Source of the DNA: Piromyces finnis finn
Lineage: Eukaryota; Fungi; Neocallimastigomycota
Length of the DNA: 64,000 bases
Direction: 5' to 3'
Assembly (NCBI GenBank): GCA_002104945.1
Contig: MCFH01000057.1
Coordinates: forward strand, 62,001 to 126,000
This document shows, one piece after another, positions 3,323-60,840 of this stretch. The notes below the pieces were generated by a model, which was given only the letters and a program-made list of their open reading frames with translations, had not been told where the DNA came from and made no database searches. Position numbers and translations under genes: made by a program. Position 1 is the first letter of the stretch. Each line of letters opens with the position of its first letter.

Positions 3323-3759
3323 ATTGGGTGATACAGATTTTTTATATATAAATAAATCAAGTATCAATATATTAAATAGGATAAGCAAGTTGGGAATTAT
3401 AAAATAATATATTAATAACACAATAATAAGGAAAACTCAGATTAAAATATAAAGTTAATAAATAAGTTTTGAATTTTGTTTTATTATTTTAAATTCTTAC
3501 TTTTTGTGTGTTATAATAATTTAATTTATTATAACTTTACAATTAGAATAGCAGAAAAAAACCTAATGTATTAATCCACTATATAAAATTATTTAAACCT
3601 ATTAAATAATTATTATACTAATTTACAGTGTTATGATATAAATTCCTTTTTTATTTCTTCTTTTCCAAAAAAAACACTCTCTACTATTTTTTTTTAAACT
3701 TTTTTTCTTTAAAATAATAGAATATCACATTAAAGTAATTTTATATGCAACGAATCTAT

Positions 3760-4255
3760 TGTAAGAAATATTTGTGGCCATAAGTTTGCCCACAAATATT
3801 TCAATTGAAACCATATATTCTGGTCACCATTTATTGGCCAGATATATGTATAACCATATATTAATGGTTATTAATTAAATAGGAAGTTTATTTGCTTTAC
3901 CCAATCAAGTGGTAAAGAAAATAAACTAATATAGTTAAATAGTATAGTTAAAACTAACGTAAAATACTTTAGCGTTAGTATTAAAGTAAATTAGTAACTA
4001 TAATAATAATTAATGTATTATAATTATACTAAATAAATAAAAGATATAATTAAAATTAATTATTTAAGTAAATTTATTTCATAATAATATTTATATATAC
4101 TTGTATTTATTCTTGTGTTATAATATTTATTTTCTTTCTTTTATTATTTTTTATAAAACTTTATTTAGTTATTAACTCGTATAGAGAGGTAATAACTAAC
4201 TTAATTAACTAAATTATATAACTTATTAACTAATATTATAAAAACACCTTTTACA
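3760..4255 (+). mobile_element. Solo LTR, family D
   Basis: TGTAAGAAAT...CCTTTTACA; TSD TCTAT; matches LTR 20279-20775. Confidence 0.93.
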
Positions 4256-4267
4256 TCTATTAGAAAA

Positions 4268-4335
4268 TTAATATTGTTTTAATGGTTAGTATTTAAGACA
4301 TTAATCTGGATCACTCGGGTTCGACTCACACCTTG
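4268..4335 (+). promoter_or_regulatory. tRNA-derived Pol III type-2 promoter cassette (A box 4275-4285, B box 4318-4327) within LTR G
   Basis: TGTTTTAATGG and GGTTCGACTC at tRNA-like spacing; alignable to the tRNA-Gln-like cassette in LTR O; no acceptor stem. Confidence 0.65.
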
Positions 4336-5944
4336 ATCCAAAATTTATTTTAAATTATTTATTTAACAAATTTAATTTATAACTCATAGAAACTTATAGA
4401 ACTTATTCGAAAAAGAATAAGTTCGAATATTCGAAAAATTAAATGTTTTATGTATTTTTATCACGAGATTCATTTTATGTAATTTTTAATTAATTTAAAG
4501 AATAATTTAGAAAGAAAATTTAATTTTTAATTTAGCCACATCAGATTTAGAAAAAGTATAAATAGAAGTGATGTGAATCAAAAATTAAATAGTTGTGTTT
4601 TTATTAACTTTTAAATTTAAATTTTTATTTTTAAAAAATTTAATAATAATAAAAATTAAATTTAAATCTTTATTTTTAAAAAATTTAATAATAATAAAAA
4701 AATTATTTTCAATAAATAAATTTATTGACTTATAGGGAATACAAAATTTATTTTTCTATATAAATATTATTAATTCCTACATTAATAAATTCTTTATATA
4801 GAAACTCGTTACATTATATTAACTATTTGATTGGAAATATTATACTAAATTAATAGTTTAATAATTATTTAATTATAACCATTTTTGTATATAATTAATT
4901 ATATTATCCTAACCTATTGCTTTATGAATATAATATTTCATTGTAAAAATACTAAATTATTATAATTTTTATAGTAGTAACGTATCAAAACGTCCCCGCT
5001 TAGTTTAGACTTCTTCCCTTGAAGTCTTTAATCTTCGTTGTATTTTGGAAGTAATTTTTAGCGTAACCATAAATTTATGATTGGGAAAAATTTCAAAGAA
5101 ATTTTTTTTTTTTTTTTTTTTCTTTAGGTAAGTTGCTGGTTTGTTTGTGTTTATATGTTTATATTGTTTATATTATAAAAATTTTTAAATATAATAATTT
5201 ATGTTATTTAATTTTGATAATATTATTAACTATCACTCTTACTAATTATTATTATTATCATACTTTTATAATTATTATATATTATTAACCAGCTAGTGTT
5301 ACGGTACTCGAGAGTTATTACACAAATGTATATGTTTATTATATATTTTTTATTATAAAGTCTTCTATTTTTAAATAAAAATTTTCATTACATTTATATC
5401 ATACATATAACAAATACATTACGTTATTATGCTACATTATTCTATTACATTATTTCAAATACATATTATTACATTATAAATTATAATGTATTACATGATT
5501 TTGTATTATGTTAACATATATTAAATATATTATTATTATTATATTTATATATATATATTTTTTTTTAAATCCTAATTTCGAAATTTAAATTTCATTTCAT
5601 TATTCTCATCTCATTTAAAATTTTATTATTACTAATATTATACTAATATTATTATTTATTATTTACTAACATTTTATTTATTTATTTATTATTATTTCTT
5701 ATTTCTTATCATTATTCATTATTCATTATTATTATTATTTTTTTATTATTTTATTTTATTTTATTTAACCCCCCTTTTTTTGTAGAAAGATAGTATGTAT
5801 GTATGTATTATTATTTATATATATATATTTATATACTTACATACTTACTTTATGATAAGTAATTTTCATTCTGATTTGGTTTGTGTATATTTTTTATTTT
5901 ATTTTGTTTTATTATTATTATTATTATTTATTATTATTACTTTT

Positions 5945-8900
5945 ATTCATTACTTTCATCGAGGTTAATCTCTGTAAAGTAAGGAATAATATTCTTTAAA
6001 TGTATGTTCCTATCAGCTATTTCACCAGTTATAGGATCATATACAGTTACTGTATTAAATTCTTTTTTTATAATTTTCAATGATCCAGTGAAAAAGGGGT
6101 CCAATTTACGTCTATTAAACACCTTAATTAAGATAAGATCACCAAGTTTTTATTCTTTCCTCATTCTTCCAATTTGTTTTCTTCGATCTTCCCATAGTCT
6201 ATTAGTTGTTTCGATATTACGAATAGCTTCCTTAATCCATTTGTCATGTGTAATGAATTTTCTTAACCAATATTCCTCTTCTGTTTCCATTTCATTTCTC
6301 TTTTCGATATTTAAGGATAATTCAAACGGTTGTAAATCACGTCGGCCGTATAATAATTCGAAACTACTATACTTAGTGGTTTCGTTTTTACAAGTACGTA
6401 ATGCCCAAAGCGCACTATCCAAGGTTTCGTCCCATTTTTCTGAATTTTCACCTAGTAAACGGAGATATTTACCTATTTCCCTATTTCTATTCTCTACCTC
6501 TCCATTTGACGCTGGATGGTAGGTACTCACATATTGTACATATACATCGTGTAGATCCAGGAAAGTTTTTGTTTTGTCGGAGGTAAATTGAGAACCATTG
6601 TCCGTAACTAGAATCTTAGGTATTCCGTGTCTTGCAAATATTTTCTTTAGGAGCTTTATCACATCATCCGATTCTGCTGTAACTAATGGTTCAGCTTCAA
6701 CCCATTTAGTTAGATAGTCAACTAATACTATAATATATTTAGTATTGTTTCTTGTAATAGAAAGTGGGCCAATTAAATCTAAACCAACTCTTGAGAACGG
6801 ATATCCAGGAACAATAGCTATACACTCTGAGAATTTGTTTAATGCTTGTGGTCGGCAGGTTTGGCAACGATGACAACATCTAATAAAATTTTGAATATCC
6901 TGTTTCACATTTTTCCAATAATAACGTTTTTTTAATCTATTGTAAGTTTTATACATCCCTTCATGTCCTATTAAGTGAGCTTTTGAAATTAATTCAAGTT
7001 GTACATTAGGGTCCTCAATAATTTTTCTTAATATATCATCCTGTTTAAAGTATTTAACACCATCGATAGAAACTATTTTTTTCTTTATAAAGTCACTAAT
7101 AAAAATTTTAATATTTATTATTATTTTCGATTAAATTATTATTATCCCTTAAAGCAATGTTATTATAAGTTACATTAACTATTTCACTTGTTTTATCATA
7201 AATAATATTTGTGTCTAATCTAGATAAAGACATTCTTCCTCCCCTCTTCATATTGAACTTTTACATTCAAGATGCTTAATTCCGTTATCCATTTCAAATG
7301 CCTGCTATTAGTTGGTTCTCTTTTACTGAAAATTCCAACCAAAGGCTTGTGATCTGTAATCACAATTGTCGTGAAAGAGTTACCGATAATAAAAGGTTTA
7401 AATTTACGAACGCAATGGTATACAGCTTTTCCTTCCAAATCAGTGATACTGTAATTGTATTCGGCTGAGGTAAGTGTTCTACATTCATAATAAATAGGTA
7501 CCTCAAAATTAACATTATTTAATTGAATTAACACACCTCCTAAACCATCTCTAGAAGCATCTGTCCTAATGATAAAAGGTTTAGAATAGTCCGGAGGAGA
7601 TAGTATAGGTGCAGTGGTAATCCGGGATTTAATTCACCAAATACAGAGTCACACGAATCAGTCCAATTAAAGGTAACGTCTTTCTTCGGAAGTTCAAAGA
7701 GCGGTTTAGCAATCTGGGCAAAATTTTTTATAAATTTACGATAATATCCAATAGCTCCGAGAAACAATTTTAGTTGAGTAACATTCTTAGGTGGTAGCAA
7801 GTTAACGATAACCTTAATTTTATCTGGGATAGGAGAAATACCCTGAGTGGAAAGTATATGTCCTAATAGTTTTACTTCTGTTTTAAAAAAAGTACATTTT
7901 TCAATATTAATTTTTAAATTATTATTATTTAAAATTTGAAAAACTCTAGATAAATGTTCGAGATGTGATTCATAGGAATCCGAAAATATAATTAGGTCAT
8001 CAATATATACGAACATGCATTCGCCAATCAATTCAAAAAAAAATCGGTTCATCTCCCTTTGAAATGTCGGGTGCGTTACATAGTCCAAAAGGCATAACGC
8101 GAAAGTTATAATTACCGAACATAGTAGTAAAAGCTGTTTTGTCTTTGTCTTACGGAATCTGGTGATAGCCTGAAAAGAGATCTAAAGTAGTAAGTATTTT
8201 AGCATTTTTACTTATAAAATGAAAAATATCATCAATTAAAGGTAAAGCGTATGAATCTTTAATAGTAACATTATTTAACTTCCTATAATCTACACACATT
8301 CGCCACTTATTATTTTTTTTAGAACTAAAACAACAGGTGATGACCATGCGGAACTTGACGGTTCAATAAGATTATTATCGATAAGCTTGGTTAGTTCTGT
8401 CTTTAAAGCCTCCGTTTGGGATTTTGATAATCTGTACGCTCTTTGTTTAATCGGAAGTACATCAGGTTGAAGTTCAATTTTGTGTTGTAATAATTTAGAT
8501 TGTCCTAGATCATCTGTACTAATATCAATTGAATATATAATTAGAAAATAGTGTAGCAGCAGACTGCCTCAATTCTTCTGGAATAGTAAGTATGATATTA
8601 TTAATTATTTCTTGTTTATCAACACTGTCCATTTGTGTATCATTCTGATTAATTGTAATAGTTAGAAGTATAGGGTTACTCTGATTCCAATCCTTGTTTA
8701 ATTCTGTAGATTCCTTGTGTATTTGTTTAATATCATATGATAGATCAGCTAACTTCAGATAATTATTTTCATTATCAATATAATATAAGTTATCAGTAAC
8801 TAAATTAATATCAAATCTATTTCTTTTTAGAGAATCTACCCCTATGAGAATGTCAAATAAGTCGTCTTTTTCAATCACCCTGAAAAAGTCGGTAAATATT

Positions 8901-20278: not shown

Positions 20279-20775
20279 TGTAAAAGGTGTTTTTTTATAT
20301 TATTAGTTAATAAGTTATTAATTAGTCAATTAAGTTAATTATTACCTCTCTATACGAGTTAATAACTAAATAAAGTTTTATAAAAAATAATAAAAGAAAG
20401 AAAATAAATATTATAACACAAAAGTAAATATAAGTATATATAAATATTATTATGAAATAAATTTACTTAAATAATTGTTTTTTAATTATATCTTTTATTT
20501 ATTTATTATAATTATAATACATTAATTATTATTATAGCTATTAATTTACTTTAATACTAACGCTAAAGTATTCAACGTTAGTTTTAACTATACTATTTAA
20601 CTATATTAGTTTATTTTCTTTACCACTTGATTGGGTAAAGCAAATAAACTTCCTATTTAATTAATAACCATTAATATATGGTTATGCATATATCTGGCCA
20701 ATAAATGGTGACCAGAATATATGGTTTCAATTGAAATATTTGTAGGCAAACTTATAGCCACAAATATTTCTTACA
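20279..20775 (-). repeat. 3' LTR, family D
   Basis: Reverse complement of 3760-4255; follows the purine tract. Confidence 0.93.
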
Positions 20776-20796
20776 ATGCCCCCCTAAGGAGAAAAC

Positions 20797-23700
20797 CTAG
20801 GCAGGGTTTTGGACAATAACCATGAATTCCTGGTAGCATTTATCTTGAAATTCCTTGAGTAGCTTATCATAGTGGGAGTTCTTGTCGATGATATCAGCAT
20901 CAACCCACTCTTGCCTAAAGTCACTAAAGGTAGCTAAATATTGGTAGTTATCCTTCTTTCTTCGGGCATTCATGATTTTGATGATTTTCTGGTAGCCCAC
21001 TGGTGCAGGTGTTAGTTCTTCAGGTTTGTTATGGTAGGGTTCAAGTTCACTGATATGAAACACTGGGTAGACGTTGGGGAAAGGTGACTTGCTGATATCC
21101 AACCGGTAGTTAAGCTTGCTCTCATCAATCCCAATAACCTTGAATGCTCCGTACTTCCTTGCTTGTAGCTTGTAGAAAGGGAGAGGGTTGTAATTTTCTG
21201 GTTTTCTTAACCACACCAAGTCCAATAGCCTAATTTTTGGATAGTTAAGTTCTCTTTTACTATCTAAGTGGTCCAAGAACCGTGTTCTTGATATATCCAG
21301 CATGTGCTTTAAGTTACCTAAGTTGCGGGCAAAGCTATCTAATACAGGAGCTTCACCAAGTGAGTGAACAAGCTCTGAGTCTTGAGGGTTCATATGTACC
21401 TGGTAGTTATACAAGGCTAAGAATGGTGACTGCTTGGTAGAACTGTGTACTGCATTATAATAGCAGAACTCAGCCAAGTACAAGTACTTCAACCATTCAT
21501 CATCATCAAAGGTTTTCACAAAGCATCTAAGGTACATACTTACGTAGGAGTTGTTACGTTCTACCTGACCAACCGTTTCGTGATGGCTAGTGGTAGCAAG
21601 GTTTACTTCTACACCAAAGAACCTCATAATGTCCTTCCACAACTTACTAGTGAACTGGACACCACGATCCGTAGTAACCGATTTAGGACAACCATGCAAC
21701 TTGAATACATGTTGTAAGTACGCTAATGCTGTTTCTTTGGCAGTAGGCATACTCCTAAATCCTACTAAGTGTATCATCTTGGTTAACTTATCACTGCAAA
21801 CCATGATACAACCCCTTCTAGTGACTTCCGGTGGTTCTGAAGGATCACTATCTGCTTTTTGTAAAAGTATAAAATTTAAAACAGATTTTATACTTAAAAC
21901 AAAACAATTATTATTAACACAAAAATAAAAAATAAAACATTAAATTTTTATTTTTAAAAAAAACATTTTTATTTAAACTCTTAAAAATATTATTAACTAT
22001 ATAATAGTTAATAATTAAAAAATTGAAAATAACAATTACATCGATTTAATAAACAAAAATTACATGTATTTATATTTTTTCATAATTATATTCTAATATA
22101 TTATTCTATTTAAATAAACATATATTTAATATAAAATAAATAAAACTAATTTAATTAAATAATAAAATAACAGAACTAAACTAAACTAATTCATTACACT
22201 TTTAATTCAATTTGAGTAAACTCAAAATTGAATAAAGCCCATGTATTTTCTATAAATTAATTTAATATTATCAATACTATTCTTAATATATTTCCTATTG
22301 AAATATAAATAAATCTATTTTTAAAACTAAGTTAAAATTATTAAACTATTCTAAATTTAAATAAAAAAGTATAATCTATTCTAAAATTAAATAAAAAGTA
22401 TTTAAAAAAATATTTTAATTATTTAAAATATTTGAAATATTTAAATTTATTTAAAATATTTGAAATATTTAAATTTATTTAAAATTCTTTTATTCCTTAA
22501 ACTTAAATATTTATCTTAATTTAAATTTAACGGAATTATTATAAAATAATTTATTATTAAATTATTCCATAAAATTTATTCAAAAATTTTATAATCAGTT
22601 TTACTAAATATTAATTTATTATTTAATAATTAATAATTAATTATTAAATAATCTAAAGATATATATTATATCTTTACACTTTTCTTCGTTCCCTGATAGG
22701 TAAATCCGTCAGGAAGTCAATTTCTACTTCTTGCCAAGGCAAATCTGCAACATTTACCCTAGCAACGCTACCGTACGGCTTGTGCTTATTGTCCTTTTGG
22801 GTACAACATATGGTGCAAGCTTTTATGTAACCCGCAACGTCATCCCTCATTTTTGGCCAGTAGTAGTTTCTGGCTATCAGGTCATAAGTTTTATCTTTTC
22901 CCAGATGACCTGCTGTTTCACTATCGTGGTTAAGTTTTATGATTGTTTCTCTTAATACCTTTGGTACGTATGTACGTTCTGGTGCATCCTTTCTAACAAT
23001 CAACCCATTAACCATCAACAACTTCTTTTTGATGAGCTTGTGGCCTCTCTTTGCATCAAGACCTTCTTTTATTTCCCTCGCAAGCTCATCCGTATTGTAA
23101 GCTTGTTTTAATTCCCCTACAAAGCTTACCTCTAACATCGCATAGAACTCTTCTTCCATGGGTGGAAATTCTTTGACCTGTTCAGGTCGAAGGAGGCTAG
23201 CTTTTTCCATCTCCAATTGTACCTGTTCTGGAGATACCATTCTTGATAGGATATCGGCTCTACCATTCATTTTCCCTGGCCGATATATTATCTCGAAGTT
23301 GTATGCAGCAAACAGCTCTTGCCATCTTGCCTGTCTTGCTGTCAACAACTGTGGTTTTGTGGCGAACAGGAGATTCCTGTGGTCACTATATACTAGGACC
23401 TTATGTTTCACACCCATTAACAGGTGTCGCCACTCAATGAAAGCATTCCTAATAGCCAACAACTCCTTTTCTGTGATGGAGTAGTTGATTTCTGCTTTCG
23501 TAAGCTTCTTGGAGTAGTAATACACAGGGTGTAGTTCGTTGTCATCACCGAGTTGTGACAATACACCACCAACTGCGTAATTACTAGCGTCACACTCCAC
23601 TATAAACTGACGGTCGTGGTCAGGATATGCTAATACTGGTGGAGCTAGTAGCATTTCTTTTAATTTTTCAAACGCCTGAATACGTTCTTCATTCCACAGG

Positions 23701-25421
23701 AACTGTACCTTTTTGGACGTCATAGCATATAACGGTCTTGCTATCTTAGAGAAGTCCTTTATAAACTTCCTATAATAGTTACAGAACCCAAGGAACGACT
23801 GTAGTTCTTTGATGTTGGTTGGTCGTGGCCAACTAGCTACAGCTTTTAACTTCTCTGGGTCAGTTTTAATACCATATTTTCCAACTACGTGACCCAGGAA
23901 TGCAAGTTCTTCTTTGTGGAACTCACACTTCGCTAACTTAGCTACTAGACGATTGTCTATTAGCTTTTGTAGGACTCTTTTTACATGCCCTTCATGCTCT
24001 TCAAGTGACTTGGAGTAGATGATGATATCATCCAAGTACACCTGACAGCAGTCATTGATTTCCTCTGCCAACACCGTATTGATGAACCCTTGGAACGTGG
24101 CAGGAGCATTAGTCAACCCGAATGGCATCACTAGATATTCGTAATGCCCAAACTTGGTTGAGAAGGCCGTCTTGTATTCGTCGCCTTCACGAATACGCAC
24201 GAGGTTATAGGCAGACTTCAAGTCCAACTTGGAGAAGATAGTCGCACCTTTCATAGCCTCAAAGACTTGACTGATAAGTGGTAAGGGGAAGGAGTTACGC
24301 ACTGTCACCTTGTTAAGACGCCTGTAGTCGGTACATAATCGCCTTTCACCACTCTTTTTGGGCACGAATAACACAGGATAACCTGCAGGACTCTCTGACT
24401 TTCTGATGAAGCCCTTTGCCAGGTTTTCATCTATATATTCCTTCAGTGCTTTTTCTTCTTCTGGATTGAAGGGATATATAGACCCTTTATGAAGACTAGC
24501 ATCCGGCTCCAGGTCGATCTTACAGTCGTAAGGACGATGTTCTGGTAGCTGGTTTGCTATTTCTTCATTAAATGCTTCTTTGAAATTGTGGTAGTACTTC
24601 TCCACAATTTCTTCAGGCGTAGATTGGTTTTTGTTTAAGTTTTCTTCCTGTACCAACCCTACGTAAATGTGATTTTTCTCTAAGTTGGATTCAAATGCCA
24701 ACCCTCCGGAATCACATTTTTTCTCTAAGTCAACACTCTGTACCAACCCTACTGAAACGGGATTTTTCTCTAAGTCGGAACTTTGTGTCAACCCTCCGGA
24801 AACGCGAATTTTCTCTAAGTTAGCACTTCGTACCAACCCTACTGAAATCACCGATTTCTCAAAGTTGGAACTCGATGCCAACCTTCCGGAACTTCCGTCC
24901 CTGGGTTTTCTTGCAGCCTTGTGGCTAAAATTACCCACGATTTCGGCTTCTATGTTTTCCGCAGTTACAGTTACCAGAGGCCTTCTTGCTTTTGCATTAG
25001 TAACTGTAGTTATTGGACTTAATTGAGTATAGTAGTAGATATCACCATCATTTATACCGTAACTGTTGGTATGTCCCTTTTCTTTATCATTATCCACTAC
25101 GAAGTACCTCACTTGTGCATCTTTATCATAACCTCTGTAGATAAAGTGCTCATCCATGAAGCCCAGTCCCACGATGATCATCTCCGGCATGTTGTCGGAC
25201 AGGTGACAACTTGTGTTGAAACAGTATGGTTTAGCTTCCTGTTCACCAGATGGAGTTAACCACAACTTCAATTGCAAGTCGTCTGAGAACTGTTTTAACT
25301 CGATATCTCCATTAACAGTTCTAAATATGGCTGGTTTATCCACTACCTTCAACCCGAGTTTCTTTGCTAAGTTTGGGTGAATGAGGTTTGTAGTGGAACC
25401 AGTATCATACAAGACTTCCAC
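20797..25421 (-). CDS. pol: Pol (PR LYDTGS, RT YLDD, RNase H, integrase, GPY/F, chromodomain-like C-terminus) interrupted only by solo LTR A
   Basis: ORFs 22674-25421 and 20797-21804 join in frame (IRERRKADSDPSEPP...) when A plus one TSD is removed. Confidence 0.93.
21860..22678 (-). mobile_element. Solo LTR, family A
   Basis: TGTAAAAG...TATCTTTACA; TSD CTTTT; copies at 38612 and 56222. Confidence 0.93.
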
Positions 25422-26837
25422 CCGTTTTGTATCCCGAGGGGTTGCTTCTTGCGTTTATTTCAACTACTAGTTGATTCTGACAGTAGTAGCTATTATTCAC
25501 CGTTGGCTGACTAGCCATGGCTTTAAGTAAGGGATTATTTCCCATACTAGAAGGTCCTTGCTTTGGTTGGAAGCTAGAACTTCTTCTAAAACCCGGTTTG
25601 TTGAACGACTCACGACGTTCTTTGTTATTACCATTTTTTACATAAGCCTGAGTGTTGGTCTGCTCAACTTTAGGCTTGTTATTTGGCTTGTTGTTCTTCT
25701 GCTTTAACTCGGCCCATTTAGAAGGTCTGCATGGGTCTGTAATATCCAATAAGGCCATGATAGTGGTCTGGCGATCTCTCTTATCGTACTTTTCTATGGT
25801 TTCATTACGGAAGACTGCTTGGTGATCATCGCACTTTAACAAGACTTCACTTAATGTTTCCAGCGTACGTTCTTGTTCAGGGATATCATAGAACGCTTCC
25901 CGGACAGAAGGCCTGACCTGTTGTATTAACACTTGTCTCCTAACATTATTTGGAAGCCCAAGTGTTTCCGTCAATTCATTGAACTCTTCCAAGTAGTCGT
26001 ACGCTTTTCCCCACTCATGTGTGAGCTTAAGCAATTTTGACTTGCAGAGTTCATGGAGAGACTCTGGTGGGAACTTATTTTGAAGGTGGAGGAATAGTCT
26101 TTCAGCATCAGGATTCCTACGCTGTAACATCCTCTCCCTAAGCCTATACCATCTCAATACTTTCCCACCTAGATGATCTTCAATGAAGCTAACCTTTGCC
26201 TTTTCGTCGTTACCATAGTCATATGGGTAACGTTTGAAATGATGAAATGATGTAAGCACTTCTCCTGAAAACCCTCTAAGTCTATCCCGTTATTATCAAA
26301 CATAGGCACTTTTTCTTCATACCTATGTACTCGCCAGTCGAACATCTTCACGTCCCCGTCCTCGGAATATTCCGTAGGGTTGGTGCTGCTACTAGTTCCA
26401 GCACCATGAGGATTACCCGTACCACCGGTTTGGTAGGATGTTCTTTCATGAGCTCTGACTTCAGCTCTTCTGTTCATGGCTTCGACTTTAGCCTCGAACA
26501 GTTTTTCTCTTTCTTCTAGAGCGTTTCGTTGTTCCCTCAATCTGGTCATCTCTTCTTCAAGCTCTTTTTTATAAGAGACAAAGGCACTAGATTGACGGTA
26601 CAACGTTTCTTGGTTGTTTAGCACTTGCTGGTGGTCTTGTAACCTTTCCTCGTGTTCTGCAGTAAAGGCATTTTCCACAGCATGCAGCTCTTCTAAGCTA
26701 ACTTGGCTAGCTGACTCATTTGCTTCCAACCTTTGATCCACTTCAACAAATTTTTGCTGAAGAGCATCGTTTATCTCGCTCTTGTAAACCTCAATACCCC
26801 GAAGTTGTTCTTCCATAGCACCCAGACGGTTTCCCAT
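25405..26837 (-). pseudogene. gag: Gag with N-terminal coiled coil, broken by small indels
   Basis: ORFs 26169-26837 and 25405-26259; a 7-nt duplication near 26240 explains the shift; paralog at 37522. Confidence 0.85.
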
Positions 26838-32164: not shown

Positions 32165-32225
32165 GGTGTGGTATAATGGTCGAGTAGTTGGCAATAACTA
32201 GAAGGTTGTGGGTTCGAAATTGGGT
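32165..32225 (+). promoter_or_regulatory. tRNA-like A/B box cassette antisense in the 3' UTR of element E
   Basis: TGGTATAATGG (32169-32179) and GGTTCGAAAT (32211-32220); AAGGTTGTGGGTTCGA is typical of tRNA variable loop/T arm. Confidence 0.55.
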
Positions 32226-34381
32226 TGGTAGAGTAACTTTGATGTAAGGCGGTTTGGCGCCAAGACTAAAGTATGTCCAACAAGTACTAGAGGTTTCATA
32301 GGCAAGGTTCCAATATGGCCGTTTGATAGTACTTGTTCTTGGTACGCTTGTAAGTCCAGTAAATACCTATGGGAGCTTCGCCAAAACGGTATCGGTTAAG
32401 TTTATCCTATAGAGTTAACATTCCCTCATTTATATGTTTAAAAAATTAATGAAAATTAGTTAATTTTATTATTATTAGTTTTTTTTTTTTTTAAATGGGT
32501 CTTGTAAAATTCTCTTAGTTTTGCTGGACAGTTCAGATTTTCTTCGGGTTCCCATGAAGCTTCTGAGATAGGATATCCTTTCCATTTGATCAAGTACTGG
32601 ATTTTGTTATATCGTCTTATTTTGTCAAGAATTCCTTCTACTTCATATTCCTCTTCTTCGTTTATAATGACAGGTGGTAGGGGTTGAATTTTTCGGTTTG
32701 CAATTTCTCCTTCGAAGTAAGGCTCGAGAGACGATTTATGGAATACCGGATCAATCTTCATGTTACCTGGGAGTTTCAATTTTAATGAGACTTCTGATAT
32801 CTGTTGTTCAATTTCGTAGGGACCGAGTTTCCGAGGGTTGAATTTATTATTTCCCTTAACTAAATTATTATTGATTAACCATACCTTTTCTCCTGGTTTG
32901 AATGAAGGGCCTGATTGTCTATGTTTGGCGAAATGTTCTTGTTTCTTTTGAGCTTCTGAAAGGTTTTTCTTGAGGGTGCTGATTATATCCTTTAGTTCTT
33001 TTGTGTATTCTTCAGCTCTTGGTACTTCACTTGTTGTTGGAATTGTTGGATTAAAATTAGGATAGAACAAATAGTTCAAGAAGAATGGTGTTTGTTTTGC
33101 GGATTCTTGAACTGAATTATTGTAACTAAATTCGGCTAGGCTTAAGTATTCGATCCAGTTAGTGCCTTTGTAGTTTGAGAAGCAACGTAGATATTGTTTT
33201 ACAACGGAGTTCACTCTCTCCGTCTGGCCATTAGATTGGTGATGATAAGCGGAAGAGTATCTCAAATCAATCTTGAGGGTAGCAAAGAATTTCTTCCAAA
33301 ACTTTGAAGTGAACTGAGTACCTTGGTCGAGGACAATGTCGGAGGGTCATCCATGAAGTTTGAAGACATTGTTAATAAATGCTTCAGCAGCACGTTCAGC
33401 AGTCGGAACTTTTTCAAGAGGGATAAAGTAAGCCATTTTTGTCAAACGATCAATGACAACAAAGATACAGGTAAATACACGAGAAGAGGGGAGGTCAGTG
33501 ATAAAATTCATAGCAATGGAAGACCAGGGACGTTCACCTAAAGCTTTTCCTAGATGATCCAACATATCTTGGATCAATGGGAGATGGTACGAGTTCCTAA
33601 TAGTGATCTCGTTTAAGCGGCGGTAGTCGATACACATACGAAGTTCTCCACTCTTCTTTGGGACAAACAGAACGGGAGCACCAGTGGGCGATTTGGATTT
33701 GCAGATAAACCTCTTTTTTAAATTTTCATTAATGGTTTCTTCTAACACCTTTGATTCTTTCTCGATAAGTCGGTAAATTGGACTGTAAAACAAGTTACTA
33801 TTTGGCTTCAGGTTGATTTCACAGTCATACGGGCGATGAGGAGGAAGTTCTTCAGCGAGCTTTTCCTCGAACACTTTGGAGTGCTGAGAGTAGTGAATTG
33901 AAATCTGGGGTGACTCAACTTCAGGTTCTTCTAAGCAAGTGAATACATTAAAAGGGTATTCAGGTGTATTTTCAGTTGGCATTTCACCCTTCGATTGGTC
34001 TTCAGGTTCAGAAGAGGTAGAATTAACAGATTCTTTCTTCAAGCAATTTTCTTTACAGTATTCGGAGTGATAAGAAACGTCTTTACTAGAAAAATTAATT
34101 GTCGGATTGTGAATGACTAACCAGTCAGAACCAATAATACAACAGTAAGAAGGCAAGTCTACGACGTAAAATTGTAACTGGCATGAGTGATTCATGTGTT
34201 CCACAGTTATAGGCCAAGTCTGGCCGATAATCTTTTGGTGACCTCCGATACCTATAATTTATGGACATTTTACTTTGGTAATTATAGGGATCTCATGGAC
34301 CTCAACAAAGGCGTGGTCGATCAAACAGAACTGTGAACCACTATCTAAGAGAACTTTAGCTACGACGGATTTGTATGGAAG

Positions 34382-34798
34382 TGTAAAGAAATGTGTCTTT
34401 AACAATAAAACAAATTATAATATTTACTAAATAACTTAGTAATATTAACACTTTAAAATATTCTGTAAATTATTAATTTATAAAAATATTATTAAAAACA
34501 CATAGAATTTAACTTAATAAGTTAGTGTTTAATAATATAATTATTTATTAATAAAATCTCGATTCTTTAAAATATTTGGGAAAATTCACTCGTATTTATA
34601 CTAAAAATTTTTTAAATTAATTTATAAAATTTTTTCAACTTAAAATTCTTAACCAATCAATAATCTTCATATAAAATAAAATTTAAAAATAAAATTATAA
34701 TTTTTAAAATAGTATCTGTCTCGAACTAGTGTCATTCAGACTCAAAGTCTTAGCTACTAACCACTAAGACAATTTAGTTGTTTCTAGTATTCATTACA
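34382..34798 (-). mobile_element. Solo LTR, family O (G-related, tRNA-Gln-derived head)
   Basis: TGTAAAG...CATTACA; TSD GGAAG; removal restores VVLP-YKSVVAKVLLDSG. Confidence 0.92.
34712..34778 (-). ncRNA. tRNA-Gln(UUG)-derived pseudo-tRNA / Pol III cassette in LTR O
   Basis: A box TGTCTTAGTGG, C32 T33 TTG A37 at canonical numbering with 4/5 anticodon-stem pairs, G53 TTCGA C61; acceptor stem absent. Confidence 0.7.
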
Positions 34799-36351
34799 GG
34801 AAGAACAACATCAACATTAATAACTATTTGAGGTAGAGAGAAATTATCCGAAAGTCGAGTGGACTTTTCTTGATCATTCAAAATATGGACCCCAGCATTA
34901 TTAGTATGGTTTTCCTTTTTGATTCTAATAGGGCATTCAGATAATCGGTGACCAGGTTTACCACAGTAAAAGCAGAGATTATCTTTCATTCGACAGTTAC
35001 ATTCTTCATTTGAGATGGGACCGAAAGAATTTGTTCTTTTCGACTGTGTGGATTTACTTGAAGAACTTTCTGAGGAACAAGGTTGGAAGCTTGGTTTAGG
35101 GCGGAAACTTTTATTAGATCTCTTACTTATCTCTTCTTGGTGACATGCCAATCTACCCCCTATACGACTTGCTATTGTTTGTAGGTTTATTAAGGTAAAA
35201 GGGCCAGGGAACATCTGGAGAATATGGGTAGCGATCCTATCGTCCAATCCATCAACAAAGGCATCCATTTTGGCTTGTTCGTTCCAAGTGGATTCGTCAA
35301 CGTAATTGTTGAATTCCTTGATGTACTCCTGAGTATTGGATAGGCCATGTTGTTTGACCTTCTTAAGTTTTTGATTAGCAATGTAGGCCATATCCTGGAA
35401 CCCAAGAACAGCTTTCATTTTCCCTACGAAGGCACCATAGTTCTGCAAACAGGGGTCATGGTTGTTAATCAAAGTAGCAGGCCAGTTCATTGCGTCCCCA
35501 TAGAGGCGGCTAACAACACAGAAAACTTTTTCTCCGTCGTCTCTTCCTAATTCTAGATGGATCATAAAGAACATTTCCATTTTGGCTAAGAATCCCTTTA
35601 GGTAGCGGTGGTTTCCGTCAAAACCATTCTTCAAGTCGGCAGAGTTATCCATAAGGAGAAAATTAAGGTAGACAATAAACGAAGTACTGAGGTAGATTTT
35701 TTTTCTTAGAGTGTTTTTATTGTAATGAAATATTATAATAATGAACACACTCATGTAATTAATTTTTTTTCTAATAATTTTATTTATTAAATTTATTATT
35801 ATAATACAACTAACTCGCTAGGTCAGTGTATTATCAAACTAAAGACAAAACAAAAAAACTAATTTTATTAATTGTTAATAAAAACACTAAAGAGCTATCT
35901 TATCTTTCATATTCTCTTTTATACATGAAAAAATATTTTTTAATACAATTTGATAAGTAAACTAATTACTTAATAATTGGTTATAAAAATATAATAATAA
36001 ATTTTTTTTCATTAATCTAACCTTAATGATTTTCTAATCTAACCCTTATCACTAGATATACTTCGTTACAATATTTATTTTATAATATAAATATTGTAAC
36101 TTTCTTAAATCTTTTTTTAAAAATAACCAAAGAATAAAAAATGTAGTACAATATAAATTAATAAAATACAAATACATAAAAAATACATAAAATATTATTT
36201 TGGAATGTATTTTATTTTCACATATGAAAATAATTTTTAATACAATGTGATAAGTGGACTAATTATCTAATGATTGGTTATAAAAAATATTATTTATTTC
36301 TTTTTTGCTAAACCTAATCTAATCATAATGAATATAATTCATTACATTACG

Positions 36352-59027: not shown

Positions 59028-59459
59028 TGTAACGAGTTTCTATATAAAGAATTTATTAATGTAGGAATTAATAATATTTATATAGAAAAATAAATTTTGT
59101 ATTCCCTATAAGTCAATAAATTTATTTATTTAAAATAATTTTTTTATTATTATTAAGTTTTTTAAAAATAAAGATTTAAATTTAAAAGTCAATAAAAACA
59201 CAACTATTTAATTTTTGATTCACATCACTTCTATTTATACTTTTTCTAAATCTGATGTGGCTAAATTAAAAATTAAATTTTCTTTCTAAATTATTCTTTA
59301 AATTAATTAAAAATTACATAAAATGAATCTCGTGATAAAAATACATAAAATATTTAATTTTTCGAATATTCGAACTTATTCTTTTTCGAATAAGTTCTAT
59401 AAGTTTCTATGAATCATAAATTAAATTGTTAAATAAATAATTTAAAATAAATTTTGGAT

Positions 59460-59527
59460 CAAGGTGTAAGTCGAACCCGAGTGATCTAGATTAATGTCTT
59501 AAATACTAACCATTAAGACAATATTAA
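59460..59527 (-). promoter_or_regulatory. tRNA-derived A/B box cassette in second G copy
   Basis: A box TGTCTTAATGG (59510-59520), B box GGTTCGACTT (59468-59477). Confidence 0.65.
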
Positions 59528-59538
59528 TTTTCTAATAG

Positions 59539-60155
59539 TGTCAAAAAGCGATTTTTTATTAAAGAAAAGTGTGGTAAGCACACTAGTTATATTAATTAAT
59601 AAATATAATACGCTTTCCTATTGAAGGCGTAAAGCTAATAATATTTATATAAAGAAATTTAAATAATATTTTTATTTTAGCAATAACTTAATATCAGCAT
59701 ATATTAAGTTATTAAAAATATTAAAATTTTTAAAGTTTTAGGTTTTATAGGAGTTTATAAATTTTATTAACTTTAAGTTAAAAAATTACTAACGCTAAAG
59801 CTTCGTAATTTTTGTCAATTTTTGTTCTTTTTATACATGAACAATTTTAATTATTACATTTTTTAATTTTAATTAATTATTGTCTAATTATAAAATATTT
59901 AATTTTTATAAATTAATAATTAATATAATTATTGTAAATAGTTAATAAATTTAAAATAAAATTTTTAATAATAAAATTTTAATAATTTTAAAAATTTAAT
60001 AATTTCAAATATTAGAAATTTTATACTTTGAAATTTTTTAATAAAAATTTAAAAAATAAATTTTTTCAAATTTTCAAATTTTCAAATTTTAAAAAAATTT
60101 TTAATTTTTTCCATGTGTCCAAATTTTTTAAATTTTTATATATGTTATTGTGACA
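59539..60155 (-). mobile_element. Solo LTR, family N
   Basis: TGTCA...TGACA; TSD AATAG; carries AGCGTTAGTAA, like the D self-priming motif. Confidence 0.9.
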
Positions 60156-60840
60156 AATAGATTCGTTACAATAATAAAACTAAAACTTAAAAAAGTGTAT
60201 TGCAAAAAATTTAGTTGTGAAGATATTAACTGGATTTAAAACAAATTCAGATAATATCTATAATTAATTAAACATAATAATTAGAATTAAATAATCCCAA
60301 TAATTATTTTAAAACACCTTTAAAAGTCACCTTTTAAATTTTGGTTCAGTGAAAGGGTTATGATTTCAAAAAATTTAATATCAATACACTATAACCCTTA
60401 ACCAAAAATAAACAACCACGAAACAAGGTGTAACTCGCCAAAAACGATCGCTACGGCTGTAAGTGCTACGGCTATGAAACCAGGTTTATTAGAAAGCTTA
60501 AGGAAAAAGCTACATTTTGGTACAATCGCGGTCCTTCTAACAGGTCATTTAAGGAAGATATGATCATTCGAAGATTTTAATAAGTAAATTAAAATTAATA
60601 TGATATCAAGTATGGATCATAGACATTTCTTATGACTTGACGAAAATTAAAAAGATATCAATAGAAATTTTAATTATATTAATTTAATTAATGATAGTGA
60701 CTGTTACTAAAAATAGAACTAAACCATTTAGGTGTAACGGTTAACATTTATAAATTAAATAATTTTAATTATTATAAAATAGGTTAATGGATCAAGTGTT
60801 TAAATGATTAATCATATGTTTATTTTATTTTATGTCATGA

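Follow-up and report, generated by a model that had tools for sequence, protein, structure and literature searches.

In a stretch of 64,000 nucleotides from the genome of the fungus Piromyces finnis finn (contig MCFH01000057.1, positions 62,001 to 126,000, referred to in the following as the window), a solo long terminal repeat (LTR) of a retrotransposon family that we term O contains close to its 5' end a decayed tRNA-like cassette with the A and B boxes of a promoter of RNA polymerase III (Pol III). The cassette recurs at the equivalent place in the related LTR families O2, O3, G and H, and retrotransposons of other, Ty3-like families have inserted in front of it at the same distance at which they are found in front of tRNA genes. 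Based on these insertions and on the targeting rule established for Ty3, the cassette is probably occupied by the transcription factors TFIIIC and TFIIIB and acts as a type-2 Pol III promoter. This assessment refers to the occupancy by Pol III factors, with the uses as chromatin boundary or as source of a small RNA that are discussed below standing outside of it.

A tRNA-like cassette at the start of the LTR

The solo LTR of family O resides on the minus strand within the gag region of a different Ty3/gypsy element (Retrotrans_gag, zf-CCHC) and, as described in a first-pass annotation of the window, it is bounded by TG and CA and flanked on both sides by a 5-bp target site duplication (TSD, Table 1). 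The minus-strand text quoted in this annotation and its A and B boxes are present, and the orientation chosen for the reading is correct, with the gag-pol open reading frame (ORF) of full-length copies running in the same direction. When numbered as a tRNA, the residues A14, G15, G18, G19, T33 and G53 to C61 are in place and an acceptor stem is absent, as had been noted, and the cassette is equally devoid of a D or a T stem. In its entirety it spans nucleotides (nt) 28-82 of the LTR and comprises the sequence features of a type-2 Pol III promoter, namely A and B boxes placed in tRNA register 30-60 nt apart and followed by a T run. The B box of the family O consensus contains one mismatch, and the copy in the window has lost 5 nt just 3' of this box. 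At a distance of 15-25 nt from the B box, T runs are also found at the equivalent place in O2 (T7), O3 (T8) and G (T4). When the window was simulated 200 times with a first-order Markov model, the combination of an A and a B box with at most two mismatches each at a distance of 38-52 nt appeared 0.15 times per simulated window, and the scan of the real window scores O and the second copy of G.

Both G LTRs of the window are interrupted by foreign LTRs and, after removal of the latter, display a homologous cassette with its A box at nt 29, with the first approximately 20 nt of the LTR also resembling O. The proposal of an LTR lineage with a tRNA-type A/B-box module at the start of the unique 3' (U3) region, which is common to O and G, is thus borne out, and a census of the genome extended it to the families O2, O3 and H. 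A 16-nt core of the module (GTCTTARTGGTTAGTA) occurs 269 times in the genome compared to zero times in the control. The first-pass annotation had also considered that the cassette might be a separate short interspersed element (SINE) with its own TSD. An independent SINE or a tRNA pseudogene inserted into some of the LTR copies would account for the tRNA likeness as such, and is scarcely credible, since the cassette is present in every one of the 30 aligned O LTRs, in the two LTRs of full-length elements and in each of the five families, always at the same nt, and shows neither a TSD of its own nor an A-rich tail.

The carriers are autonomous chromoviruses

For family O, at least 40 near-full LTR copies with 92-100% identity were identified among 263 BLAST candidates. 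Some of these LTRs form pairs that are 6.1 kb apart, and three such pairs (L031-L033) define full-length elements of about 6.5 kb, which are the parents that the first-pass annotation had proposed to search for. Both LTRs of each element contain the cassette, and an intact gag-pol ORF of 1480 amino acids is found on the cassette strand. As this ORF is enclosed by the LTR pairs, the O elements are autonomous and carry the cassette in sense. Their assignment as chromoviruses follows from the domains detected by Pfam in L031, which include Ty3_capsid, RVT_1, RT_RNaseH, rve, SH3_Tf2-1 and a C-terminal Chromo domain (7e-16).

The LTR contains a presumed promoter of RNA polymerase II (Pol II) with a CCAAT-like box and TATAAATA located 130-170 nt downstream of the O cassette. 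About 30 nt past the TATA box, the 10-nt sequence GAGATTTTAT is complementary to ATAAAATCTC, which directly follows the 5' LTR at the location of the primer binding site (PBS; 6572-6582 on the minus strand of L031). This pair covaries between families, reading GAGTTTTTAT and ATAAAAACTC in O2 and O3 and GTGTTTTTAT and ATAAAAACAC in G, and the O, O2, O3 and G chromoviruses all lack the TGG-containing PBS of tRNA-primed elements. From these sequences, members of the four families seem to employ a self-priming mechanism akin to Tf1, with the complementarity marking the start of Pol II transcription. In light of the covarying pair, the cassette, which is found 170-220 nt upstream of the presumed Pol II start, lies deep within U3 and is not needed as primer. 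In the G elements L095 and L096, the PBS that follows the G LTR is in turn followed by a minisatellite of GAGTCCAAGAG-like units. The reverse complement of this minisatellite flanks the O element in L031 (7040-7100), which is why this O copy probably resides inside a G element.

Ty3-like elements insert at tRNA genes and at cassettes

Six Ty3-like LTR families, termed X, Y, Y', W, U and an AT-rich family ending with TTATTACA, have their ends 11-18 nt upstream of tRNA genes. The targeted genes encode tRNAs for Arg, Glu, Gly, Trp, Cys, Ser and Met or are Thr-linked, and nearly all sampled tRNA genes contain the end of a Ty3-like LTR upstream. Members of Y, Y', W, U and the family ending with TTATTACA were each found at both tRNA genes and cassettes with long identical flanks. 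X, whose LTR is 495 bp long, ends 11-12 nt upstream of genes for tRNA-Arg(TCT), tRNA-Glu(TTC) and tRNA-Gly(TCC), which corresponds to 24-25 nt before A14, with the LTR facing the tRNA genes by what is its 5' end in the sense of the element. At cassettes, X ends are located 23-26 nt before the equivalent of A14. On the scale of the genome, where counts refer to pattern matches, an X end followed by a B box within 55-80 nt was detected 49 times compared to zero times in the control, with about half of these sites being tRNA genes of 8 isoacceptor types and the other half being cassettes of O, O2, O3, G and H. Similarly, at most 56 of the 269 core occurrences are preceded by an LTR end in ACA 16-28 nt upstream of the core, equivalent to 21-33 nt before A14.

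The invasion of cassettes is also manifested in individual copies. In 15 of the 30 aligned O LTRs, which come from a BLAST sample that is biased toward near-complete LTRs, the first 3-15 nt are missing and the end of another LTR abuts instead. The 5-bp duplications TGTAACGAAT[ACTAG]-X-[ACTAG]AAATAAC in L017 and [ATACT]-X-[ATACT] in L008 prove insertion into the LTR. Both G LTRs in the window have been struck in the same manner. The X solo LTR in the first copy is 95% identical to an X LTR found 11-12 nt upstream of tRNA genes. For U, the family that interrupts the second copy, the same LTR end is found in locus L081, where it precedes a tRNA-Arg(TCT) gene by 12 nt. The suggestion of the first-pass annotation that the module could recruit integrases directed to Pol III genes is thus supported by insertions of the X and U type with TSDs in front of cassettes.

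A fixed short distance, many types of tRNA genes and 5-bp TSDs are the features of start-site targeting as practised by Ty3-like elements, and all three are displayed by X, Y, W and U. Together with Y, Y', W, U and further families, X is assigned to the Ty3/gypsy type, which was demonstrated for X only. In yeast, the Ty3 intasome is tethered at Pol III start sites by TFIIIB, which TFIIIC in turn positions while binding to the A and B boxes (PMC5911963; bioRxiv 10.1101/2021.07.27.453949), and for that reason we infer that the cassettes were occupied by the same factors. Alternatively, the insertions could reflect a hot spot unrelated to Pol III, in which an integrase prefers the sequence or DNA structure of LTR ends or of the hairpin. 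All insertions are indeed found at most 15 nt from the LTR terminus and beside a 7-bp inverted repeat. We nevertheless regard this explanation as rather improbable, since six families are found at the same distance from tRNA genes of at least 8 isoacceptor types, which have nothing but the A and B boxes and their spacing in common with the cassette, and since the distance follows A14 (21-30 nt in O, O2, O3 and G) instead of the LTR end, despite differing upstream sequences.

In addition to tRNA genes and cassettes, X ends were observed before other AT-rich tRNA-like pieces that were not called by ARAGORN (L104, C6:20010-20150; L105, C166:391410-391550; L106, C198:222460-222605), which may be either further mimic families or degenerate tRNA genes.

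Features of the window

The coordinates of the described features and of a copy of element X are compiled in Table 1. All X LTRs contain a 13-bp inverted repeat (GAAATATTTGTGG..CCACAAATATTTC; 3765-3802 on the plus strand of the window) at the end that faces tRNA genes, 5 nt from the terminus, for which Rfam scores a mir-15-like hairpin at the level of chance. A further A/B-box-like pair (TGGTATAATGG .. GGGTTCGAAAT, 42 nt apart) is found at 32169-32221 on the plus strand, where it lies in antisense orientation within the 3' part of the internal region of the element hosting the O solo LTR, and may be due to chance.

Table 1. Retrotransposon features in the window, with positions counted from its first nucleotide.
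Feature	Position	Strand	Remarks
Solo LTR, family O	34382..34798	-	417 bp, TG..CA; 5' end intact in this copy
TSD CTTCC (GGAAG on +)	34799-34803 and 34377-34381	-	read directly
A-box-like TGTCTTAGTGG	34771-34761	-	LTR nt 28-38; consensus TRGCNNAGTGG, 1 mismatch
Hairpin of 7 bp, GTCTTAG-(10 nt)-CTAAGAC	34747..34770	-	overlaps A box; not a tRNA D arm
Anticodon-loop-like C-T-TTG-A (loop CTTTGAG)	34747-34742	-	direct reading
B-box-like AGTTCGAGACA	34717..34727	-	consensus GGTTCGANNCC; family O consensus AGTTCGAGACC
B-box-like AGTTCGAGAC (10-nt part quoted in first-pass annotation)	34727-34718	-	44 nt past A box
T4 run, candidate Pol III terminator	34706..34709	-	~85 nt past predicted start
Pol II core of O LTR	34551..34600	-	TATAAATA 34600-34593; presumed R start GAGATTTTAT 34560-34551
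Solo LTR G, copy 1	3746..4813	+	TSD TTATA; split by X solo LTR; cassette 4274-4328
X solo LTR within G copy 1	3760..4255	-	TSD TCTAT (3755-3759, 4256-4260); ends 25 nt before cassette A14
Solo LTR G, copy 2	59028..60170	-	TSD ATAAT; split by U solo LTR; cassette ~59467-59521
U solo LTR within G copy 2	59539..60155	+	TSD AATAG (59534-59538, 60156-60160); ends 24 nt before cassette A14
Element X	20279..26837	-	3' LTR 20279-20775, preceded in element sense by polypurine tract AGGGGGG
Element X, Ty3/gypsy pol	20797-26837	-	no chromodomain detected by Pfam

Conservation of the module between LTR families

An alignment containing one LTR from each of the families O, O2, O3, G and H shows pairwise identities of 0.40-0.76 and a mean column identity of 0.44. 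The three best conserved 11-nt windows of the LTR all belong to the cassette and contain the A box together with the 5' arm of the hairpin (0.89), the 3' arm of the hairpin (0.83) and the B box (0.72), with the 20 nt between the conserved blocks scoring 0.52. In G the hairpin reads GTCTTAA..TTAAGAC compared to GTCTTAG..CTAAGAC in O, and thus both arms have changed and their pairing is kept. The boxes alone do not account for the conservation of the 3' arm, which thus hints at a role of the structure. Two metagenome contigs (L107, JAEEGL010195063.1 and L108, JAEEGK010359767.1) contain related LTRs of chromoviruses, in which the same hairpin/A box and the B box are preserved as well. On the L108 contig, only about 190 nt separate the start of the LTR from that of the gag ORF, and this LTR is consequently either much shorter or contains a deletion.

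These relationships bear on the possibility that the cassette is a neutral relic, an old tRNA or SINE fragment that is bound by TFIIIC by accident and confers no benefit to its carrier. Such origin would be compatible with the absence of a cloverleaf, with the lack of extra conservation within family O and with the cost to the carrier, where half of the copies were struck by other elements. Conversely, in five families and two metagenome relatives no part of the LTR is kept better than the boxes and the hairpin, with the intervening 20 nt having diverged freely, and a costly relic should have disappeared from some lineage. We thus consider the persistence of the cassette as mere relic to be unlikely.

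The possible tRNA ancestry of the module

The search with ARAGORN did not detect any tRNA genes in the 64-kb window, and an assignment of the cassette as tRNA gene or pseudogene was rejected, as there is no cloverleaf and the fold corresponds to a 7-bp hairpin that is distinct from a D arm. Hits of Rfam to SNORD56 and mir-15 were equally dismissed as chance-level. For comparison with tRNAs of the host, only 10 isoacceptor types were recovered. When aligned to this set, the cassettes of O, O3 and G outperform each of 300 shuffles, H is marginal (P=0.04) and O2 is not better than its shuffles. The alignment to these host tRNAs has thus upheld a resemblance to tRNA for O, O3 and G, for H only marginally, and not for O2. 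As judged from these alignments, the module is tRNA-like beyond chance, with a parent tRNA that cannot be named.

The annotation had gone further and derived the cassette from tRNA-Gln(UUG). In family O, the residues C-T-TTG-A are in register of the anticodon loop and the adjacent stem TAAGA/TCTGA pairs in 4 of 5 positions, as expected if the identity of this tRNA were still recognisable. Outside O, the triplet is not retained in O2, G, H, L107 and L108. The loop sequences are CTTTGAG (O), CCTTGGT (O2), CATTAAT (G), CTATGAA (H) and CTAATAA (a metagenome relative), and since the triplet differs in every family, the assignment as Gln(UUG) was read from one family only. Among the 10 recovered host types, O, O2, O3 and H align best to Met(CAT), with O2 remaining at shuffle level, and G aligns best to Arg(TCT), and the stem TCAGA/TCTGA is also found in tRNA-Arg(TCT) and tRNA-Ser(TGA) of the host. 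Finally, we did not find a canonical gene for tRNA-Gln(UUG) in four IUPAC pattern searches of the genome, which does not establish its absence from the assembly. The patterns covered the anticodon loop together with a canonically spaced B box, in the variants Y60 and R60, the same with an intron of 2-31 nt, and the D loop with the anticodon. Their matches were due to chance or were O3 cassettes, and none of the three candidates fetched was a tRNA. The proposed parentage could thus not be sustained, and a recognisable descent from tRNA-Gln(UUG) appears quite unlikely. That no such gene was found is itself unexpected, because CAA should be the main Gln codon in a genome this AT-rich, and the genes may contain an unusual intron or T loop or be located in unassembled sequence.

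During the comparison of host tRNAs, we observed genes for tRNA-Glu(TTC) and tRNA-Arg(TCT) that are arranged head to tail at a distance of 9-10 nt (L036, L038, L040, L044, L057 and L063; about 1419-1574). The pair is found at many loci, with at least 34 Arg(TCT) genes having identical model scores and with the copy of the Glu tRNA in L041-L043 containing an internal deletion, and it may constitute a dicistronic or amplified unit.

Assessment of factor occupancy and proposed role

Several observations weigh against an occupancy of the cassettes by Pol III factors or limit the evidence in its favour. Rfam was searched at the gathering threshold and, for 601 nt and five family loci, additionally at E<=10, where the tRNA model RF00005 did not match O, O2, O3, G or H, and the check by covariance model was thus negative for these families. 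In light of this result, the evidence for a tRNA origin consists of the boxes, their register and alignment scores that are modest. The T runs constitute weak evidence in a genome that is AT-rich. At least one of the 56 ends preceding a core is an intact LTR end that was mutated from CG to CA (L021), and the sample of the top 40 BLAST hits is enriched for LTRs broken near an end. Contigs from public sequencing runs that contain the cassette (labelled 'RNA?') cover flanks and LTR junctions as DNA would and are thus uninformative on expression.

Similar reservations concern conservation. In the comparison of families, the apparent conservation of motifs containing G and C is inflated, as these align more readily than AT-rich filler. 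Among copies of family O, substitutions amount to 2.0% in the cassette compared to 0.7% in the remaining LTR, almost all of them at G/C sites. The expectation that the boxes would be kept better than the rest of the LTR thus holds between families and fails within O, where they decay at the same rate or faster. Since inserted copies decay neutrally, preservation within O is not to be expected, and we judge the comparison within the family to be uninformative on function and the comparison between families to be valid and positive. In the alignment of the O copies (L001-L033), substitutions amount to 4.4% at G/C positions and 0.4% at other positions of the cassette and to 1.9% and 0.5%, respectively, elsewhere. 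Together with examples such as the change of TTCGAG to TTCAAG or of TGTAACG to TGTAACA, this bias suggests CpG deamination or a process resembling repeat-induced point mutation.

The observations are best explained as follows. The families O, O2, O3, G and H form a clade of autonomous Ty3/gypsy chromoviruses that keep in every LTR, at nt ~28-82, a decayed tRNA-like module, which no longer encodes a tRNA and most likely still assembles TFIIIC and TFIIIB. Transcription by Pol III is predicted to start near LTR nt 12-16, and would generate an RNA of 85-100 nt with a 5' hairpin. With respect to the benefit to the carrier, we favour a TFIIIC-type chromatin boundary, which would keep the nearby Pol II promoter with its CCAAT and TATA boxes open in heterochromatin targeted by the chromodomain integrase. 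A small Pol III RNA with its own function would be about equally possible. The boundary is speculative because tRNA genes in yeast can also repress adjacent Pol II promoters. As a side effect, each new copy would spread a landing pad for elements that target tRNA genes. The complete scenario, in which chromoviruses carry a portable TFIIIC boundary and thereby provide surrogate Pol III sites by the hundreds that are exploited by a second, Ty3-like guild, is offered as a tentative proposal that is possible and rather doubtful in its entirety.

Implications and relation to known systems

The repeated marking of the cassettes by integrases that read Pol III start sites turns a resemblance in sequence into a testable claim on factor occupancy. 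In fungi that are difficult to manipulate, the cassette may serve as a compact element with which Pol III boundaries and targeted integration can be investigated. For annotation, it serves as a warning that tRNA-like matches and nested LTR stacks in such genomes may be transposon-borne. If the proposal is correct, one transposon lineage would shape the niche of another and might divert insertions from real tRNA genes.

The carriers resemble chromoviruses of the Tf1/sushi type with respect to their chromodomain integrase and to a PBS whose complement is presumably formed by the first 10 nt of the element's own transcript. We know of no Pol III module described in Tf1 LTRs. Barriers to heterochromatin are formed in yeasts by tRNA genes and by B-box sites (extra TFIIIC, ETC, and chromosome-organizing clamp, COC, sites), and SINE B2 and MIR elements act as insulators in mammals. 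The proposed arrangement of a TFIIIC-bound module between flanking chromatin and a Pol II promoter is similar, although a barrier activity of the cassette would be purely inferred.

Insertion positions of a Pol III-targeting element, TRE5-A of Dictyostelium on the ribosomal DNA element, have been interpreted as evidence for binding sites of TFIIIC and TFIIIB outside tRNA genes (PMC5391098). Unlike the elements described here, TRE5-A is a non-LTR retrotransposon that inserts about 50 bp upstream and was investigated experimentally, whereas our assignment is derived from fixed genomic insertions alone. As in case of Ty3 from S. cerevisiae, X, Y, Y', W and U give rise to 5-bp TSDs and end 11-18 nt upstream of the mature 5' end of tRNAs, close to the start of Pol III transcription, whereas the targets in P. 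finnis include a promoter mimic borne by a retrotransposon. To our knowledge, there is no described case where Ty3-like elements use the LTR of another element as surrogate Pol III gene. In the literature searched, we did not find an autonomous chromovirus as carrier, a module located upstream of a Pol II promoter, this host lineage or a repeated capture of Ty3-like insertions.

The closest counterparts of the cassette are found in Helenus, a group of miniature retrotransposons with terminal repeats (TRIMs, specifically TRIMp3; Kojima 2024) with tRNA-like LTRs in rust fungi, some Agaricomycetes, animals and a plant, and the statement of the first-pass annotation that it knew of no fungal example is thus superseded (PMC10886601). 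Their LTRs contain conserved A and B boxes, mostly without encoding a functional tRNA, and fungal members generate 5-bp TSDs (PMC10886601). Helenus elements are non-autonomous, 311-1263 bp long and thought to be entirely transcribed by Pol III, many families can coexist in one genome, and Cassandra and Ajax constitute their 5S counterparts (PMC10886601). The fungal representatives in Pucciniales and few Agaricomycetes have been linked to Copia helpers, and the same study makes the case that a Pol II promoter is obligatory for autonomous partners and reports no targeting of the module by other elements (PMC10886601). The LTRs of the O type share with Helenus the tRNA-derived sequence with conserved A and B boxes inside the LTR, whereas their carriers are not short TRIMs and are instead autonomous chromoviruses of about 6.5 kb that possess a Pol II promoter of their own downstream and inhabit an early-diverging fungus. 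Pol III promoters derived from small RNAs were in LTRs previously known only from miniature, non-autonomous elements and, as the carriers described here are autonomous and driven by Pol II, the module must in their case serve another purpose.
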